Shown: piece after piece, positions 1-9,933 of the stretch
Layout of the letters: every line of letters starts with the position of its first letter
How positions within the stretch are numbered: position 1 is the first letter of the stretch
Assembly: GCA_021613535.1 (NCBI GenBank)
Contig: CP075497.1
Coordinates: 13,578,001 to 13,642,000, forward strand
Length of the DNA: 64,000 nucleotides
Source: Adineta vaga
Lineage: Eukaryota; Animalia; Rotifera
Reading direction: 5' to 3'
Translations under genes and position numbers: made by a program
Notes under the pieces: generated by a model
The model's input: only the letters and a program-made list of their open reading frames with translations
What the model was told of the DNA's origin: nothing
The model's database searches: none

Positions 1-3000
1 TTAAACTTTCAAAATAATCAGCTTTCAAACCATTCACATTAGTGAAACAATAGTCAATCTGTGTTTTAGCATTAGTCGAACTTTTATCTAGTTTATTAGT
101 TAAAGTGAGTCCGAATGATTCCATATATTTGATAAACTTATGATTGATTTTCGTCTTCAAGTCTATATTGAAATCACCAACAACAACTATACTTTCACAA
201 ACTCGTTTAGAAATAGGAATAACTTCGTCAATATGTCGTTTTAGGACATCAAATGATGAATTTGGTGAATTATAAACAGAAATTATACAAATATCATCAA
301 CTTTTATTGAAGAATATTCAATATGATCTTTGCCTGAATATTCATCTTTCGGCAATAACTTCGAACTTCAAGTGGTTTTTCAAATAAGTAATTTGACCGA
401 ATGGTTTTCGTACATCATGACAATGACGTCTGTGAATTATCTTAAAACCTTCAATTTCTAAGTTGTCAATAGGTTTCGTCCATGTTTCAACAAGACTGAT
501 TACGGATGCAGACAAACGTTTTGTCAGATTTGACATCTAAAAAATGTTTATTCAATGATTGCACATTATGAAACATAATGGAGAATTTGTTCTCTTCAGA
601 TTCTTCAGGAAATTCAAGCGAAAATTTCAACATTCGCTCGGATCTCATACTTTTGAACATCAACGCCACTGCATCATTACGTTCAGGTGGTTTTGGTGGA
701 GCGAAGTCTCCAATTAAATATAAACCACTTGCTTTTGTTGCACGACTACAAGCAACATACAATTCAGATCTTGTCATTCCCTTCTTCAAATTGATAGCAA
801 CCTTCTCGTAAGTACCACCTTGACTTTTATATATGGTCATAGCTTCACAAGGTACTATTGGAAACTGTTTACGTTCTACTTTGAAGTTTGTTGACTTCGT
901 ATTTATTTGGCGTACTACTGGTTCAATTGGTGTAAGACTAGGATCAATAGTTCGATTACGCATTACGTTGTGAAAATTGGTTCTAGCTTTCCGTCCAGTT
1001 TTTTCTTCATTGAATTTAATCCATATTCTACATGGTACTGTTTCATTAGTTTTCTGAAGTTTTCCGTAATCAATCATCACTAACTTTCCACAAGCACCAT
1101 TGACTAATCCATCTTCAGTATCGAAATTGACTGTCAACATATACTTAGCACCCACCTTCAAATCGATTTTAAGTGGTAAGCCATAAGTTTCAGTTGTTTT
1201 GAGATTCTTTACGTTGTCCAACACTTTTTCTTTTAATGATGCAAGTCCATCACCAATGCAAAAGTCATATGCATTGGCAGTTGCGCCTTCAGTATGAAGA
1301 CTAGCTAATGCTTTTGTATTGTATGCATCAACTTCAGCATTACTTCTGAATATCCTTATGGCATTTTCAACCATTTCCAGACTTTCAATTGAAACAATTC
1401 GTGACTTTAACAGATGAATATCTTCATCTGTCATTGCTCCTTTAGCTATATTACTTAATGCAATGGCAAAAGTCTTATCATCCTTTTGCCTCATAATTTC
1501 TGTTAATTCAAACAATTCAAATAGTGACCATAACGGACTATCTACTAAAGCATTATATGAATTATTAAACTGGAATATGTATTTATCACCAACTGGTCTT
1601 AATTGATTGAAATCGCCTAGAACAATGACTGATATTCCACCAAATGATTTCTTTGTTCTCATTATTTGCTGCAAACGTGCATCAACTTGTTGAAACATTG
1701 TAAAACCAACCATTGATATTTCATCTATAATTAATAATTGTAAATCTTTTAATTTAACTCCAATTCTATTCGAAACATCGCTATTTAGTTGGACGAGTTT
1801 ATGTTTGCATTGATTTACTGGTAAACTTAAAAATGAATGCAAAGTCATTCCATCAATTAATGCTGCTGCTTTGCCAGTTGGTGCACATAGCGCAGCACGA
1901 ATACTATCTGGATTATATCCTGGAACTGAATTATAAAATCTTAGTATTGATTGATACACTGCTTTGATTAGAGTGCTTTTGCCAACACCTGCACCTCCAT
2001 TGATGAAATGAAAAAATTGATTTTCACCATTTTTAATCAAATTCATCACATTTAGAGTATATTTCCTTTGATTACTATTAAGATTTCTCATCATTTGTTG
2101 ATATTCTGTGTCTGGTATTATTTTGGGAACATTAAAGTGTTCGACTTTTTCAGTTCGAGTATTTATTCCCATTTCAACAAAAATATCACCTTCAGTATTT
2201 CCTATTTCATAAATGAGAAATTCATTTTTATCTTGATCGTATTCAATATTTGTATCATCAATATCATCTTCATCTTCTCTCTTTTCCATATGTTCTTCGA
2301 AAGTTTGTTCGAATTCATTAGCTTCACGATGAATATATTCAGATCTTTTCTGTTGAATTATATCTTTGTACAATTCAAACTTCTCTTCATGATTTATATG
2401 AATAAGTTCTTCTTCTTCATTAGTCCATGGAAGAAACAGCATCAGCTGCTCTCTATAATAGTTTTCAGTATCTTGATGTAGCTTAAAGTATCTGTATCTT
2501 ATGATTTTCTGCTTTGTTCTTTTTTTAATCCAACCTTTTCCATTTTTCATCTTCAAAGCAGTAGTTTTATCATTACTTTCATTTTCAGTAATATCTTCGT
2601 CATCAGAATTTTCTGTAATTCGATCACTGTCTGTTTTTTTCTTTGAGATATTATACAACGAAGCAAAATCAGCCAGACAAACATTTTTCATTTCGTCCGG
2701 TCTATTAACATACGTCTCAATCAAGCCCTCAACAAATACATCTTTTGAATCAGGCTCCAATTTTTGAAGAATTTCATCTGATTTGAGCATAGAAATTCTA
2801 TTTTCAGGTCTGTTTGTATTAATAAATACAGTACTTCTGCTACTGATGGAAAGTGGAATACTTAAAATATGATAAACAGCTTCTTGTGCAGAAATTTCAC
2901 TTGAATTCAAAAATTTATTTGCAATAACTCTAAGACGTTCTCTGACTGTGTTATTGCCTTTTTTTAGTTCGTTCAATGCTTCTCGTAGAAGTTTAGACAT

Positions 3001-5518
3001 GCCGTTTTCAGATTTGTTGATGTATTCAACACAGTACTTTAAGCATGCATAAGGATCAAGAATGAACTGAATATCCATATTCGCTCTGTGTAATGACATT
3101 ATTTGTGGATTATATGCATTGATTCGGATTTCATTTGGAGCACGTTTCAAGAAGAGCTTTGCTTTTTTTAAGTCAGCTCGAATCATTTTAATATATTGTT
3201 TTTCATTCATATTAATATGTTCCAAGAATTCATCAAAAGTTAATGAACTATCGATATCTTTTGAAGTTCTTTCATTACGTTCTCTTTCTTTTTACTTATT
3301 TCTTCACATTCTTTTCTAGTTAACTTCTCTTCGTCACCAAATGGTTCCAAAATCATAGTTTCTCTCATCGGAAAATATGGAATATCAAAACGACATATAA
3401 TACAACCGTTCACATATTTTTTACAGGTATGTGAGTGTTTATGACGTTGCAAACATATAAGTTCTTCAGAAAATTCTGTTGGTTTAGAACTAACCGAAAT
3501 CAGTTTATCAATAAATTCTATACATTTTTTAATTGATTCAGGTTTATTTTTGTCATATTTTGGAGCATTTTTTAACCATATCAAGGCATGAACATGTGGT
3601 GAACCACGAGCTTGAAATTCAATTCTGACATATTTATCTTCTAATTCATGGCCTTGAAATGGACCAGAAGGAGCTGATAATATTTCCCATAGACATTTTA
3701 CTCTATGTTCGAAATAACGAACACATGTTACAGGATCCTTTCTGATCAAATCACACTTCTTTTCATAGCTCATATTCTCTGCTTCTTCTAATGTTATGAC
3801 TTTATTTTCCAACACCTGAGTCAATATTACAATAAGTTCTGACCACTTTGTTTCTGCTGCTGATAAAGTCAAAAACAATGTGGCACAACCTAATTGTCGG
3901 TTCATAGCCATAAGTTCTTTTTTTTTCAGTTCCCAAAATGCTGGTGAGGATCGATCACATCTCAAGAATGTGAAAGCATCATCATTATGTATTAATCCAT
4001 TAACATAATCTCGATTGAGCATTTGTGCAACAGTTACATTCTTTGTATTTTTTGTTTTTCTCAAAGTTATTGAAATAGCATCTGAAAACTTTCTCGTTTG
4101 CAATTTCTTATAGGTAAAAAATAGTTTCGATATTCTACCACATCTTCGATCGAACATTCTTAGTTCTGACTTAGCAATTTTAGCATAAGTCAATTTAACA
4201 TTTTCTTTGATTTTTCTTTGTTTACCACAATAAATTTTTGGAAATGTTAATTCGTCAACTTTCATATTCATCAAAACTGATATTGGTCTGTTATTCTCTG
4301 CTGGAGCAAATTTAATACCAGTATCATTTTGATCTTCAATCTCATCATTTAATAATGTTTCGGTAACTGCTGGATTGATTGGTTTATCGTCAGATTCATT
4401 CCAATTGGCATCATCATCATCTTCCGATTCCTTCATATTTTCATTCTCATGAATTTTTTTATCTTCATCTTTAACAATGAAATTTTCTCGTTCATTAGAA
4501 TATTCATTCAACCAATCATTGGATATAATGATACCTTCGGCTTTATATAGTTCCTGTTCGACAAGATATTTAACAGCTGTATGTACAACTTTTGGTCGAA
4601 TTGTTTCATACATGAAGGCGTTTTTATTTTTCATTTGTCTCATGAGTTTTAGTTGAATCGTATGAGTATCACTAAACTTTCTCGGTAAGACTGAAACATT
4701 TGAGTCAACATTCATCGGAACATTGACCAGATTACCTTTGAGACCAAATTGCTTACAGAAGCCTAACGTTCGAATTACCATAAAAGGAATTCTTGGTGAT
4801 ATTAGTCGTTCTTCTAATTCAGTCAAGATTTTCAAACAATCTGGTATTTCATAGAATGCTAAACCATTAGATAAACTGATATTAGGTACCTTTTTCGACA
4901 TAATGTCCTTTCTACAAGTGACACATAATTTAATGTTCGCATGTTTCAAATAACAAACTGTATTGATAAATTATTCTGTTAATCCTTTTTTTTTAACATC
5001 TCAACTGTATATTCTCTGATGGAATACTCAAACCATAAACCATCACAGCAACTACAAATATGAGTAGGTCCTTCGTTTATTTTTGATTCATAATTTGATT
5101 TCATATTTTCCAAATTATTTTTGTATTTTTCTCTGTTATTATGTATTCTTAATGCATTTTATTTTCTCTCCTCTTCTTTGAATTCTTCATCTTCTCGTGT
5201 AATTTTCAGAGCTTCAGCTCTTCTTTTATTATCTACTTTTTTGAATTCATCATTTTGTCGTTCAGTTTTATGCGAACCTGCTCGCCTTTTATTTTCTTCT
5301 GTTTTAAATTCATCATCTTTTTGTGCAAATTTTAGAGCTGAAGCTCTTCGTTTGTTTTCTTCTTCTTTATATTCATCATTTTGTCGTTCAATATTATGAG
5401 AATTTGCTCGTCGTCTGTTGTCAAACAAGCGATACTCATCATCAGTTCTTTTTTCTCTCATTGTCCTAGCCATCTCAACATTTTTTTGAGATATAGATCT
5501 CTTTTTAAGCTTTGGCAT
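1..5518 (-). pseudogene. Helentron/Helitron2 RepHel-endonuclease transposase, disrupted; runs off the left edge
   Basis: N-terminal charged ~20-aa repeats from ATG 5518. Zn-finger GPTHICSCC...CVTC (~5075-4915). Rep motifs FLTLSAAE, EFQARGSPHVH (HUH, with S as in Helentrons) and YACLKYCVEY. PIF1 helicase motifs GGAGVGKS, IIDEISM, GDFNQLRPV, KSQGGT, YVACSRA. C-terminal AP-endonuclease-like domain reconstructed across frameshifts (FHNVQSL, LVETW, ISVYNSP, VVGDFNID, TQIDYCF in 1-580). In-frame TAA stops at ~5160 and ~4972; frameshifts at ~5120, ~4990, ~3250, ~515, ~345. Confidence 0.93.
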
Positions 5519-6374
5519 TTCTTCAAACGAGATGGAAAAGCACTTTTGATGTGGCTGTTTTTTTCTGAGCTGTAGATAATGAAACAAAAAAATATACGAT
5601 TAAATCAGTTGTTAAAATTTCAAATGAAGGCAGCTTCTCACTCAGATTAAGCACGTGTAAATATCGAGTGAGCCTTCTACTGAGTGAGGCACGTGTTTAT
5701 CTCTAAACTTGGTGAGATAAGCAATAAATAAGTTTCTTTCGAGATAAATCTTCGTTAAGGCTTGGTGAAGACGTATATACTCGATTCGAAGTAAGAAACT
5801 TTAGACAATGAAAAATTGTCAATTTTTTGAGCAATAATTTGATTTATATTTTCTTTATTTGAACAAAAGAATTTGATTTTATTGTTTTTATTTGATTGAT
5901 GTTTTTATTTATTTAATTGAAAATAATAGAAATCTAAAAGGACGAAAAAAACGAATGACTGTGATTTCAGTCACGAAAATAATTTCATTTGTAAATGAAA
6001 ATAGATCTTAAATTAATGTCTGATTTTATTTGTATTCATTGCTTTTTAATTAGTACAAGATATAAATTAAAGACCAAATGATGATTGAAACAATTAGATA
6101 CTTTTGAGAAAACTTCTTTTTATTTGAAACAAGAAAACAATGTTTCTATACATCTTTTTCAAATAGTATACGACATGTTTTTTAATTTCTTTTGTTTACT
6201 TAGCGAAGAAAAAACGTCATATTGTTGTTGTTGTTGTGAAATATGATGAACAATAAGATTTTTATTTATTTTTTTCTAAAGCAGCTCGGAATAAATCAGT
6301 TCTAAAACGAAGAGTAGTTTAATTTAAGATAAATAAGAGATGAATAAAACCATACATGGTAGATTTAAAAATAT

Positions 6375-7015
6375 CTACGGATATTTGAGTTTGTTGTTCA
6401 CTGGTTTCTTGTTTTTTTTGGGGATTTTAGGCAATTGAGAAACACTCTTTATATTTCTTTCCACTACTTGTATATTAACTGCTTCATGACCTTTTGATGC
6501 TACAAAACAGAAAAAAATAATTCATGTCATGAAGAAAATTAGATAAATTACTTTTGATAACATCGAATTCACATTTATCGGATATAAAGAGTTTTTTTTC
6601 ACGAGCAGATGGATTAACAATAGATGCTTCTCTTGCAAAAATATCCTTGTACTGATTTTTATTATTATCACTACTACAAAGCACATGAGATTGAATATAA
6701 AAAAATAAAAAGTGCATGATAATAACCGTTTAAGAAAAACGTAATGCTTTGCTCGATTGACCGTGACAACTGTTCCATAGATCGCTTTATCTAAGAAAAG
6801 AATTTTTATTTTAATTTTTTTAATTTTTGTAGTATATTACCAACAAGTACAGGTGCATTATTGTTAATAGGAACGAGTACTTTATTCTTGCTTCGAATAA
6901 TTGTTCGTTCATTATTATCAGCAACTGTTGAATCATTATCATCATCAATAATCACTGATTCATTGCCAATTGAATCTGCACGTGTTCTTGTCATTGATTG
7001 CTTTGATTTATTCAT
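6375..7015 (-). CDS. Spliced 4-exon gene, 161 aa, divergent cold-shock-domain (Y-box-like OB-fold) protein
   Basis: Exons 7015-6841, 6790-6727, 6673-6552, 6499-6375 joined by GT-AG introns of 50, 53 and 52 nt give a 486-nt open frame. Product includes VLVDKAIYGTVVTVNRAKHYVFLKRSDNNKNQYKDIFAREASIVNPSAREKKLFISDKCEFDVIKTSKGHEAVNIQV, which aligns by eye to the Y-box CSD ([45 protein letters not shown]). Lys-rich tail. Confidence 0.8.
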
Positions 7016-7746
7016 TTTCAAACTGAAATATTTCTACTTATTATCATTTTGAAGTGTCTTATTTAGAAGGTGTATTCTGTTGTTTTTTTTGAACAATCAA
7101 AGCAAGATTTTATGAAACAAAAAAGACTTTCATGGAAATAAAGAAGTTTCTTTAAAAATATTGAAAATGACGAACAATGAAAACAATTACATATTTGAAC
7201 AAGATAAAAATATTATTCATTTATCTTTTATTTCACATAAGAATAATTTAAAATATTTTAATTGTTCAATCAATAATAAGAATTATTTTATTTTTCATTT
7301 CAATATTCATTGTTTCGTTCATAAAAATTATTTCAACGGAAATTTTATTTGAAATGAAAACGTTTTTTTATTAATATCAGAACAAATTAGTAAAAGTCTT
7401 CATTTCTTTCACTATATTCCATTTGTTCGTTCAATTCCGTTAACTGAACAGTAACCAACGACAATCAAGTTAATTGCAAAATGATTGTATTATGTAAATG
7501 AAGATGTCGAGTTCAAATATGAACCGTACTCAATTCCAAATTCTTTCACATGAGCAATAGTCAAGAGAAATTGTGTTTATGAAACAGATTCTTCGTGATA
7601 GTTTCGGTGTTCAGATATTCTAGAATGAGTTAACTATCTCGTACACTTTTTGCAGTACACATAACTTTCGGATAAAATCCGAAGTTTCCGCATTTATTTA
7701 CATGATAATTAAATATATACATTAAATACTTCTTTATTGATTTCAG

Positions 7747-9933
7747 GTTCTATTTGGAATGTGGTTAATGGCTTTATTGGTGAACAGCAACACATTAGAT
7801 GAAATGGTCATTGTCTGGTGGAATATTTGTATTGTTCTTCTTAGTGTAAATCAAAATGATCAACTCAAAATGGCTGAAAAAATGAATAATAATCCCAATA
7901 CAACAAATTTTGTACTACAGAATGTTATAGGGAAACTCAAAGGAGAATTCACTAGCACTCTTGAAACAAATGTGAGTGAAAAGCATCAAAAATTAAATGT
8001 AGTAACTTTCTAATCACTAGATATCAGCCAATAGTCTCGCGACGTATATGTCACAAGGAAAATTAAAATCCAATGCAATTTAAAATTTCCTCGTAGCATA
8101 TATAAATATAATTTAGGATGAATCCGAGTTTTCAAATTTAATATATTTGAGAATAAGATTTTATGAGCACTTATAATGTTCGGATATATTGTATTACTCG
8201 ATTACTGTAATTTATCTTCTTATTTATATTGAATGGAAAAGTCCACAATAAGAGAAAAAGGCGAGAGATAAGATATGAAAGAAATTAAGGGAAGCTCTAC
8301 CAAAGAGGGAAAGGAGTAAACATGTAAATACGAGACAATAAAAGATAAAGTGGAACAATGAAAGTATAGTATGATTATTGATACTTAACTTCGTGTGTGA
8401 TTTATGTGAGATTTTATTTTCCTCAAATATATAAAAAGAAAAATGCTCGACGAAAGAATAGAAAAACTATTTCAAATGCAATTGCGAAAGTGACGTATAT
8501 AATATTTGTATTATCTAATTAATTTTATGTTTTGATACTCTGATTGAATAAAATACATTATATAAAAAAACCTCCTCTCATGATATATATCTTAATTCAT
8601 TACTAAGAAATGCATTACCTTATTTATTTAGACCGATGAAGATGATTCAAATTACTTGATACTTGGTGAAGAAGACGCTCTCTTATATTTAGAATCATCT
8701 TTTAAAAAATCATTCACCACAATTTTCCAACAATGTAAAGAATTACTCAAGATTTATGATACCGATCAATGGAAACATTTACAAAGTAATCCATTATTTT
8801 CTGCTGCATTTCTTACTCGCCTTCTCAAACTTTATATGCTGACAGCTACGCTCTGGAGTAATCTTCTTTTGGGTAATTTTGCTCATCGATATGGTTACTC
8901 ATCAGCTTCAACAATACCATCATGCTCATGTCATTTTGGAAGAAGTACAGGAGTATCTAAATCAAGAATGCGAGTATTAAAAGAAGCTATCCTAAATAAT
9001 AAAGTATACTCACGAGTTGACGAAGTGATAGGTAAGTTAGGTGAAACAATTGAAGCAATTGAATTTCAATTTGCTGATTATCCCTTGATCAAAAACACAA
9101 AAGATCGACTGTTGCCTGCAAGAAAAAAAAACCAGCATCAGAAGAGTGGAACAAACGTAGAAGGACGGGAAGCACCGACAATACTTATGCCTCTGGACAT
9201 CCATCGATGAATCTTGTTGCCATGATGAATACTCGTTTATTAGGACAAAATGATGATGCAAACCTAGGTAATGAAGTGGAAATTTGCTTAGAAAGTAAGA
9301 AACGATTAGATTATGCAACTTTATATGCATATAATAATTCCATCATAGTAGATACTTAGAAAACTTCTTCAATTTATTTTTACTACTAATTAAACCTTGA
9401 TTACATTCATGATTCCATGTATTAGTAGCGAACCAACTACTAACTATTTTTCGAGAATTTATGAAATTTAGATGTTGGACAACCTTCACATTTTACGCTT
9501 CGAGAACAAAAGGAGCAGTTGTTGGTATAATAGCATGATACAAATGATCCTGGCATCAGGCAACATCATTGAAGCAATTCAACGTATCGAAATCATCGAT
9601 GACGATCTTGTATCTTCAAAAGTGGTTTTTATGATCAAAATGTTGAAAATATTGGTGAAGAGACAGAGAGACTCAGGCAATGACGACAAGAGAAGAATTG
9701 TTGAACAAAGTTTGATTTCGGAACAACTGGGATATCTTCAATGGGCTGGAATTAACATTCGTCCTGATTATTACAATTGCATCTTCGACTTTTTTCAGAC
9801 AGCAATCGCAAATGTTCTTGAATTTTATGATACTGATTTTAATTTTGTTATCGATATTTCGATGAACAGCCAAAACGCAGGTAACGCACAGACGTTTTTT
9901 CAACTTGAAACGGAAGTATCAAGAGAACGGTAA
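7747..9933 (+). pseudogene. Degraded NOF/Foldback (MULE-related) transposase-like fragment ending in a USP/C19-peptidase-like Cys box
   Basis: Exon-like pieces 7747-8001, 8632-9267, 9472-9933 bounded by AG/GT. Motifs ALLVNSNTLDEM..ICIVLLS, NPLFS..LLKLY..LWSNLLLG..RSTGVS..LKEAIL and EEWNKRR (after a frameshift in the A-run at ~9125) resemble NOF-like proteins from memory. FENKRSSCWYNSMIQMIL resembles the USP NxxxxCYxNSxLQ box. No N-terminus or TIRs found. Confidence 0.5.

Follow-up and report, generated by a model that had tools for sequence, protein, structure and literature searches.

Helentrons, reportedly described by Poulter et al. in 2003, encode a RepHel protein with an apurinic/apyrimidinic (AP) endonuclease and often an OTU domain, and RPA-like accessory open reading frames (ORFs) of Helitrons are said to have been described by Kapitonov and Jurka in 2007. 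Both groups of elements often carry RPA-like ORFs that bind single-stranded DNA (ssDNA) and are thought to act in transposition (PMC4067079, PMC6431247). These ORFs, which are related to RPA70 DBD-A/B and are found in plant Helitrons as well as in mite, oomycete, and other Helentrons, represent independent captures in different lineages and are proposed to coat ssDNA (Thomas et al. 2014, PMC4067079). The accessories listed in reviews of Helitrons and Helentrons are RPA, OTU, SET, and AP endonuclease, and the retention by a Helitron of a complete, functional captured unit is considered exceptionally rare (PMC6431247). A 64,000-nucleotide stretch of the Adineta vaga genome (contig CP075497.1, positions 13,578,001 to 13,642,000; 32% G+C), referred to here as the window, contains a Helentron with an additional gene, both on the minus strand. 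On balance, this gene is probably the 5′-most gene of a bdelloid Helentron, is derived from a Y-box gene, and encodes a binder of single-stranded nucleic acid that serves the element, with ssDNA or a terminal hairpin as the favored ligand. Similar to the RPA-like ORFs, it would be a separate, host-derived OB-fold ORF in a rolling-circle transposon. In contrast to them, it has a single Y-box cold-shock domain (CSD), three host introns, and a new basic linker and C-terminal helix. A Y-box CSD differs from the helpers so far known to have been retained, namely RPA-like binders, OTU proteases, and SET domains, and a search of the available literature library found no paper that ties Helitrons or Helentrons to a cold-shock or Y-box gene.

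Exon-by-exon translation of the minus strand joins four ORF pieces, from position 7015 to 6375, through three predicted GT–AG introns to give 486 nt, or 161 codons and a stop (Table 1). An initial annotation, made from the sequence alone, had proposed this spliced frame, and its coordinates, intron lengths (50, 53, and 52 nt), and phases (1, 2, and 1) were reproduced. Its last 16 codons, however, correspond to a frameshifted tail, and in limiting the gene to 6375–7015 it overlooked a fourth intron, a 40-nt fifth exon, and a 1-nt deletion. The CSD pattern that it had described is present in the spliced frame, in which GTVVTVN, KHYVFL, DIFAR, EFDVIK, and KGHEAVN can be read. A second A. vaga copy (locus L001) and five loci of four other bdelloid species have this exon–intron pattern as well, including the 64-nt exon 2 and the intron phases, which places the gene structure beyond chance. 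The position and phase of intron 1 are equal in L001, L002, L008, L009, L010, and host Y-box genes, the length of exon 2 is also 64 nt in L001, L002, L008, and L010, and the last exon is also 40 nt in L002, L008, L009, and L010. Exon 1 of L001 contains an extra 30 nt (an insertion or a repeat) relative to the window, and exon 3 measures 110–122 nt across the family versus 116 nt in the host Y-box gene of Rotaria sordida. Self-comparison of the window revealed no second copy of the gene within it. The public A. vaga model for this region, I4U23_031535 (P0001), is a chimera that starts inside intron 2, contains exons 3 and 4 with the shifted tail, and is spliced to the ORF at the 5′ side of RepHel (6375–6717 and 5159–5587).

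As initially described, the gene is located upstream of RepHel on the same strand and is followed by the pre-Rep, Rep, and helicase ORFs (Table 1). The second A. vaga copy, which is found on another chromosome and encodes protein P0028, is 87–92% identical to the window from RepHel through the gene to a boundary at 7700–7707. Beyond this boundary the two loci are unrelated: they have the 5′ boundary of the element and RepHel in common, and not their flanks. Downstream of the gene in R. socialis (L008) are DUF6570 and Helitron_like_N and then PIF1, Exo_endo_phos_2, and OTU domains, and the same order of gene and RepHel is observed in R. sordida (L009) and A. steineri (L010/L011). Another R. socialis locus (L135), which shows 75% identity to the window, contains the 5′ motif of the element, the gene, and the start of RepHel. 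Three environmental contigs (L138/L139/L140) contain the motif and the gene, and L138 has an uninterrupted ORF of 2183 aa that spans RepHel, endonuclease, and OTU. In all of these loci, as in the window, the gene and RepHel are linked on the same strand. Because the two A. vaga copies share homology from gene to RepHel along with a 5′ boundary, and because the order recurs in other species, the gene is, on these comparisons, part of the Helentron and not a neighboring host gene. The co-occurrence with RepHel elsewhere, which the initial annotation had proposed as a check, is borne out in the second A. vaga copy, in three Rotaria species (R. socialis and R. sordida among them), in A. steineri, and in environmental contigs, where the gene lies between the 5′ terminal motif and RepHel; the gene, rather than being single-copy and unlinked to RepHel, is multicopy and linked to it in other genera.

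A Pfam scan of the four single-exon translations, which are short and divergent, returned no match. When exon 3 alone (40 aa) was used in a phmmer search of 1.8 billion representative proteins, seven proteins were retrieved, including P0001 and two full-length Rotaria relatives. Searches with these relatives and with the family alignment retrieved 28 and 36 proteins, respectively, and the family comprises 36–40 predicted proteins. All matches that carry an organism name are bdelloid: Rotaria magnacalcarata, R. socialis, R. sordida, two Rotaria sp., Adineta steineri, A. ricciae, and A. vaga. The protein search with the family alignment, which relies on a word prefilter, did not reach canonical Y-box proteins, with which the family has no 5-mers in common. 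In the A. vaga paralogue P0028, the protein encoded by exon 2 is identical to that of the window and 4 of 84 codons differ in exons 2–4.

Several lines of evidence place a Y-box-type CSD in this family, as the initial annotation had suggested. The Pfam CSD model (PF00313) matches 14 of 18 members at E ≤ 0.01 (best E value of 1.4e-7), and several members carry precomputed PF00313 matches. A family profile searched against the PDB finds eight sequences at E ≤ 1e-3, all of them Y-box proteins (E value of 3e-6), and phmmer with a single member scores 27 bits to YBX2/YB-1 and 14 bits to bacterial Csp. An AlphaFold (AF2) model of P0028, prepared with the family alignment, has five strands with a predicted local distance difference test (pLDDT) score of 78–91, a disordered N-terminus (pLDDT of ~30 in the exon 1 region), and a C-terminal helix (residues 171–188). 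The top Foldseek matches to this model are the CSDs of YBX2 and YB-1 (E value of 5e-6, TM-score of 0.75–0.87, and root-mean-square deviation (rmsd) of 1.6–2.0 Å), followed by bacterial cold-shock proteins, with a probability of 1.00 to the YBX2, YB-1, and CspA domains. The paralogue model is consequently that of a five-stranded OB-fold CSD. In addition to having Y-box proteins as its closest sequence and structure matches, the family has the N-terminal extension and long β3–β4 loop of the Y-box type. It resembles YB-1/YBX1, YBX2, and the bdelloid host proteins P0046 and P0111 in these features, in introns 1–3, and in the 64-nt exon, with 27–29% identity and an rmsd of ~1.7 Å to YB-1/YBX2.

Unlike those proteins, the rotifer gene product lacks the ~200-aa Arg/Gly-rich C-terminal domain, has altered RNP1 and RNP2 motifs, has lost a Trp, and is encoded by multiple copies in a transposon. 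In the family proteins, the domain is followed by 40–60 residues that comprise a basic linker and a single helix. Because the long C-terminal domain is absent, the gene is best described as Y-box-derived and not as coding for a Y-box protein. CSDs bind both ssDNA and RNA. Relative to the canonical motifs, KWFN is replaced by VTVN, NGYGFI by KHYVFL (KHYxF(I/L) in the family), and DVFVH by DIFAR, in agreement with the divergent motifs initially noted. Canonical RNP1 and RNP2 motifs are consequently not found: the two Phe residues and the Tyr are kept, whereas all members are without the Trp and have Arg in place of the His. Invariant columns of the family are located at the RNP1 and RNP2 positions, and the replacement residues are likewise invariant. 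This invariance argues that the binding face has been kept in use but re-tuned, which would make the family a natural experiment on the re-tuning of CSD specificity. No RPA family was found in Pfam scans of the family members, and RPA70 homology is not observed. The relation to the RPA-like accessory genes is one of analogy (OB fold and single-strand binding) and not of membership.

The argument for the origin of this domain comes from its introns. The initial annotation had described, for animal YBX1, a 64-nt exon bounded by introns of phases 1 and 2, and the R. sordida host gene and seven Y-box genes on environmental contigs show this pattern. When metagenome contigs were scanned for the Y-box motif WFNVxxGYGFI, 120 loci were obtained, none of which has the vertebrate-type exon peptide or resembles vertebrate or human sequence, and a stricter pattern, which required a short intron where one was predicted, had no match. 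The seven environmental genes, all genomic, have a 64-nt exon preceded by a phase-1 intron (at the Ala of ATKV) and followed by a phase-2 intron (at the Arg of FI(N/H)R). Two of them (L052 and L070) are AT-rich with 55-nt introns and belong to a type represented by the transcript L021, which shares 80% identity with an A. ricciae protein. The R. sordida host gene (P0111) has exons of 136, 64, 116, and 177 nt onward, with introns at KPVI/ATKV (phase 1), GFIQ/R (phase 2), and EFDIVQ/G (phase 1), and the A. ricciae host gene agrees at introns 2 and 3. Introns 1–3 of the Helentron gene, with the 64-nt exon, are those of the bdelloid host Y-box genes in both position and phase. Furthermore, an intron after VFVHQ that is present in other animals (L047, L048, L067, and L099) is absent from the bdelloid host genes and from the Helentron gene. 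Recognizable homology to the host begins with the final residues of exon 1 (..PVI) and ends ~8 codons into exon 4, and the remainder of the protein is new.

Since three introns and the 64-nt exon match the host in position and phase, the comparison supports the proposal that a host Y-box gene was captured as genomic DNA with its introns, and the shared lack of the VFVHQ intron matches it too. The segment acquired by the ancestral element would be the 5′ portion of a bdelloid Y-box gene, starting at the end of exon 1, stopping ~8 codons into exon 4, and including introns 1–3, and the Y-box C-terminal domain would have given way to a basic linker (..KLPKIPKKK..) followed by a short amphipathic helix. 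Such uptake of host genomic DNA with introns resembles Helitron gene capture in maize, bats, and fungi. In a tree of the domain, the family is monophyletic (100/100) within the eukaryotic Y-box clade (99/99 versus bacterial sequences), and a clade of the family with the bdelloid host Y-box genes is not rejected (approximately unbiased test, p = 0.30). The public A. ricciae Y-box model P0046 (L133, 3001–4433) reads through intron 1, giving ..TYPFCPNDFTIYLFAIRFK.., and its true first intron is very likely at the R. sordida place.

In the proposed layout, the element would consist of a 5′ terminal motif with a hairpin, the five-exon gene of ~150–200 codons, an intergenic region of ~0.7–1 kb, and a RepHel–AP endonuclease–OTU ORF. 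The encoded protein would retain the five-stranded cold-shock (OB) barrel and the invariant residues at its two nucleic-acid-binding strands, with altered chemistry. The displaced or circularizing DNA strand and the terminal hairpins are its leading candidate ligands in rolling-circle transposition. This role is the job proposed for the RPA-like genes of other Helitrons and Helentrons. By analogy, an ssDNA or terminal-hairpin role is rated the most likely, followed by an RNA role and then by a passenger, because RPA-like binders are proposed in other Helitrons and Helentrons and none is found in this lineage. The L138 element with the intact ORF has no RPA gene, and, unlike other Helentrons, the bdelloid elements have no RPA or SET gene and instead have the Y-box-derived gene in the 5′ position. 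The locus would then be an instance, independent and datable, in which rolling-circle transposons convergently recruited an OB-fold binder, and would support a need of these transposons for a single-strand binder of their own.

Several observations weigh against this interpretation. The contigs of three putative RNA runs include none over the gene; this neither supports nor refutes expression, and expression and all splice junctions therefore rest on comparative evidence. The domain tree did not place the donor, and the stem branch of the family is long (3.05 changes per column), so the argument for origin is carried by the introns. In the Pfam comparison, P0028 and P0007 score 22.4 and 23.8 bits, respectively, both below the gathering score of 27 bits, and the evidence for the fold comes from the P0028 model, from which the window protein differs in the domain codons given above. 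The loss of the stacking Trp and the His-to-Arg change may mean that binding is altered, weak, or directed at RNA or protein. Finally, at loci L002–L007, L012, and L136, no RepHel is found within 10 kb of the gene, which indicates that the gene can persist without an adjacent transposase. Four of these loci (L002–L005) have the terminal motif ~1.1 kb downstream of the gene and are tentatively regarded as internally deleted derivatives.

The best surviving alternative, which we consider distinctly less probable than ssDNA binding, accepts the same gene and origin and assigns to the protein, on the model of Y-box proteins in germ cells, the packaging, stabilization, or translational regulation of the element's own long mRNA. 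Y-box proteins, from which the domain descends, have mRNA packaging and translation as their main known roles, the closest structures are CSD–RNA complexes, and the gene lies directly upstream of the long RepHel message. The Y-box C-terminal domain that drives mRNP packaging is, however, the very part that is missing from the family, and the family has also lost the Trp with which YB-1 stacks on RNA bases.

Whether the gene serves the element at all bears on a further alternative, in which it is a transduced host fragment whose apparent conservation would reflect the youth of the copies or selection for a function other than transposition, such as interference with host silencing that depends on the Y-box protein. 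Gene capture is a well-known property of Helitrons (PMC6431247), and both the copies that lack RepHel and the broken state of the window copy (see below) would be expected of such a passenger. The substitution pattern points the other way. Between the window and L001, the coding sequence has 13 synonymous and 10 nonsynonymous differences (ratio of nonsynonymous to synonymous substitution rates (dN/dS) of 0.19, Fisher p = 2e-4), exons 2–4 have 12 and 4 (dN/dS of 0.075, p = 2e-6), and exon 2 has 5 and 0, with the non-coding parts being 6–10% different. For the genes of a Rotaria sp. and R. sordida, dN/dS is 0.069. Between subfamilies, synonymous sites are saturated while dN is 0.14–0.32. RepHel has a dN/dS of 0.14–0.23, and the value for the domain of the helper gene is at least as low. 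On these ratios, the comparison of copies that the initial annotation had called for indicates that the helper gene is under purifying selection across several bdelloid species. Captured fragments normally decay, whereas this domain has been kept across genera, in the same position in at least four species and in several divergent subfamilies; it is therefore improbable that the gene is a passenger. The idea of a Helentron insertion beside an ordinary host gene, or beside an ORF that arose by chance, to which the A. vaga annotation lends itself by calling P0001 and P0028 as genes without a transposon label, is rejected by the linkage data as extremely unlikely: true host Y-box genes differ (~300 aa with ~200 residues beyond the domain, nine exons, ordinary neighbors), the two A. 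vaga copies share the element and not its surroundings, and the linkage recurs in other genera.

Bdelloids, already known for horizontal gene transfer, have traditionally been considered asexual. The RepHel DNA of A. vaga (window 5..5337) and R. socialis L008 (2457..7797) is 91.8% identical over 5.35 kb, with a dS of 0.18–0.23. In contrast, the cold-shock genes adjoining RepHel in these two loci are 66% identical and saturated at synonymous sites. For comparison, the host Y-box genes of A. ricciae and R. sordida, a small sample, have a dS of ~0.66. Because the RepHel and helper identities differ in this way, and in view of the host dS, the data suggest transfer of the element between genera together with module exchange, with a switch near 5340–5540. 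A broader scenario, in which a Helentron lineage confined to bdelloids has replaced its RPA-type helper with an intron-bearing Y-box domain that is now required for transposition, and in which helper and RepHel have separate histories, is less likely than not. If the histories are indeed separate, the element would move between genera and swap modules. The gene could serve as a marker for transposon movement and module exchange among bdelloids.

The window copy itself looks inactive. Relative to L001 and to the whole family, one nucleotide is absent at 6424/6423, which creates a premature TAG at 6377..6375 and places the last 16 codons of the initial frame out of register. After the deletion, the family frame reads PQKKQETSEQQTQISVDIFKST (6423..6358) and continues through intron 4 into exon 5; the conserved tail, intron 4, and exon 5 are thus present yet disconnected. 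An AATAAA overlaps the stop region of exon 5. A contig from a 2013 DNA run, the independence of which from the source sample of the assembly is not established, spans 6248–6626 without gaps and has the same text as the window, so that an artefact confined to this assembly does not account for the deletion. The window RepHel has two further gaps relative to L008, one of 10 nt at the Rep/helicase junction (~3262) and one of 2 nt in the endonuclease (~517). With three frame-breaking gaps and the conserved C-terminal helix cut off, the copy appears to be decaying.

Table 1 Features of the gene and the surrounding Helentron, in window positions
Feature	Positions	Strand	Description
5′ terminal motif	7637..7700	-	~63 nt, small hairpin; start of homology between the two A. 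vaga copies
Upstream non-coding region, putative promoter or 5′ untranslated region	7016..7636	-	91.1% identical to L001
Exon 1	6841..7015	-	175 nt; ATG and variable N-terminal region, predicted disordered; ends ..APVLV before phase-1 intron
Intron 1	6791..6840	-	50 nt, GT..AG, phase 1
Exon 2	6727..6790	-	64 nt; cold-shock domain strands 1-2, GTVVTVN..KHYVFLK
Intron 2	6674..6726	-	53 nt, GT..AG, phase 2, within Arg codon
Exon 3	6552..6673	-	122 nt; DIFAR (RNP2 position) to EFDVIK
Intron 3	6500..6551	-	52 nt, GT..AG, phase 1; homologous to bdelloid host intron after EFDIVQ
Exon 4 (frame of initial annotation)	6375..6499	-	125 nt including TAG
Exon 4 (family frame)	6356..6499	-	Last domain strand KGHEAVNIQVV, basic linker PKIP.., start of conserved tail
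Intron 4	6302..6355	-	54 nt, GT..AG, phase 2; by alignment to L001 and family gene models
Exon 5	6262..6301	-	40 nt; ..TDLFRAALEKNK then stop; end of conserved C-terminal helix
Charged repeat-rich ORF before Rep	5159..5587	-	Internal duplication of ~130 nt
Rep part of RepHel	3240..4949	-	DUF6570 and Helitron_like_N (E 6.5e-20)
PIF1 helicase and start of AP endonuclease	487..3225	-	PIF1 E 1.6e-30; out of frame with Rep, 10-nt gap versus L008
AP-endonuclease part	1..536	-	2-nt gap near 517 versus L008; element leaves the window at its start

The coding part of the remaining element has the features of a Helentron. The window ORFs encode a Rep (HUH) and a superfamily 1 PIF1-like helicase, and the start of the AP endonuclease (..ISLVETW..) is located at 536..342, frameshifted, with the remainder beyond the window start. 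In L008 and L138, Exo_endo_phos_2 is found in the same ORF as the helicase. As in other Helentrons, Helitron_like_N, PIF1, Exo_endo_phos_2, and OTU domains occur in one long ORF, and an abundant short repeat has the same terminus as the element; the terminal motif with its palindrome and A/T-rich flanks may correspond to the ends of other Helentrons. The upstream non-coding region is partly kept (72–78%) in the Rotaria copies L135 and L136. The charged ORF that precedes Rep is kept in L001, L008, L009, L010, L135, and L138. Within this ORF, a tandem duplication of ~130 nt (78.6% identical, at 5154–5410) repeats ..RRANSHNIERQNDEYKEEENKRRA..; the region is present in all related loci, with varying length.

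The 5′ motif is predicted to fold as DNA with −7.4 kcal/mol (z = −2.25) and, at 7637–7699, is 88–89% identical in the Rotaria loci. In the DNA run, its summed contig depth is ~17,500 versus ~250 for the rest of the element (~70x), with many different, A/T-rich flanks at 7634/7637 and 7698–7700. Because of this depth and the diversity of flanks, the motif is common to a large population of short elements and is probably the terminus of a large family of non-autonomous (HINE-like) elements. Several putative RNA contigs also contain the motif. An inverted copy is present after the ORF in L008 and downstream of the gene in L002–L005; none was found downstream of the intact ORF in L138. The inverted motif may represent the 3′ end of the element, although L138 does not share it; the window does not include the 3′ end.

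An Rfam search of 5500–8500 returned no match. Between the gene and RepHel, an (AAC)n microsatellite is present at 6226–6245, which is much longer in L001 (10815–10890); Helentron relatives such as DINE-1 are known to have a microsatellite (PMC4067079). In L138, a PIF/Harbinger-type element (DDE_Tnp_4 and a Myb/MADF gene) at 1427–3834 lies directly upstream of the Helentron 5′ motif.

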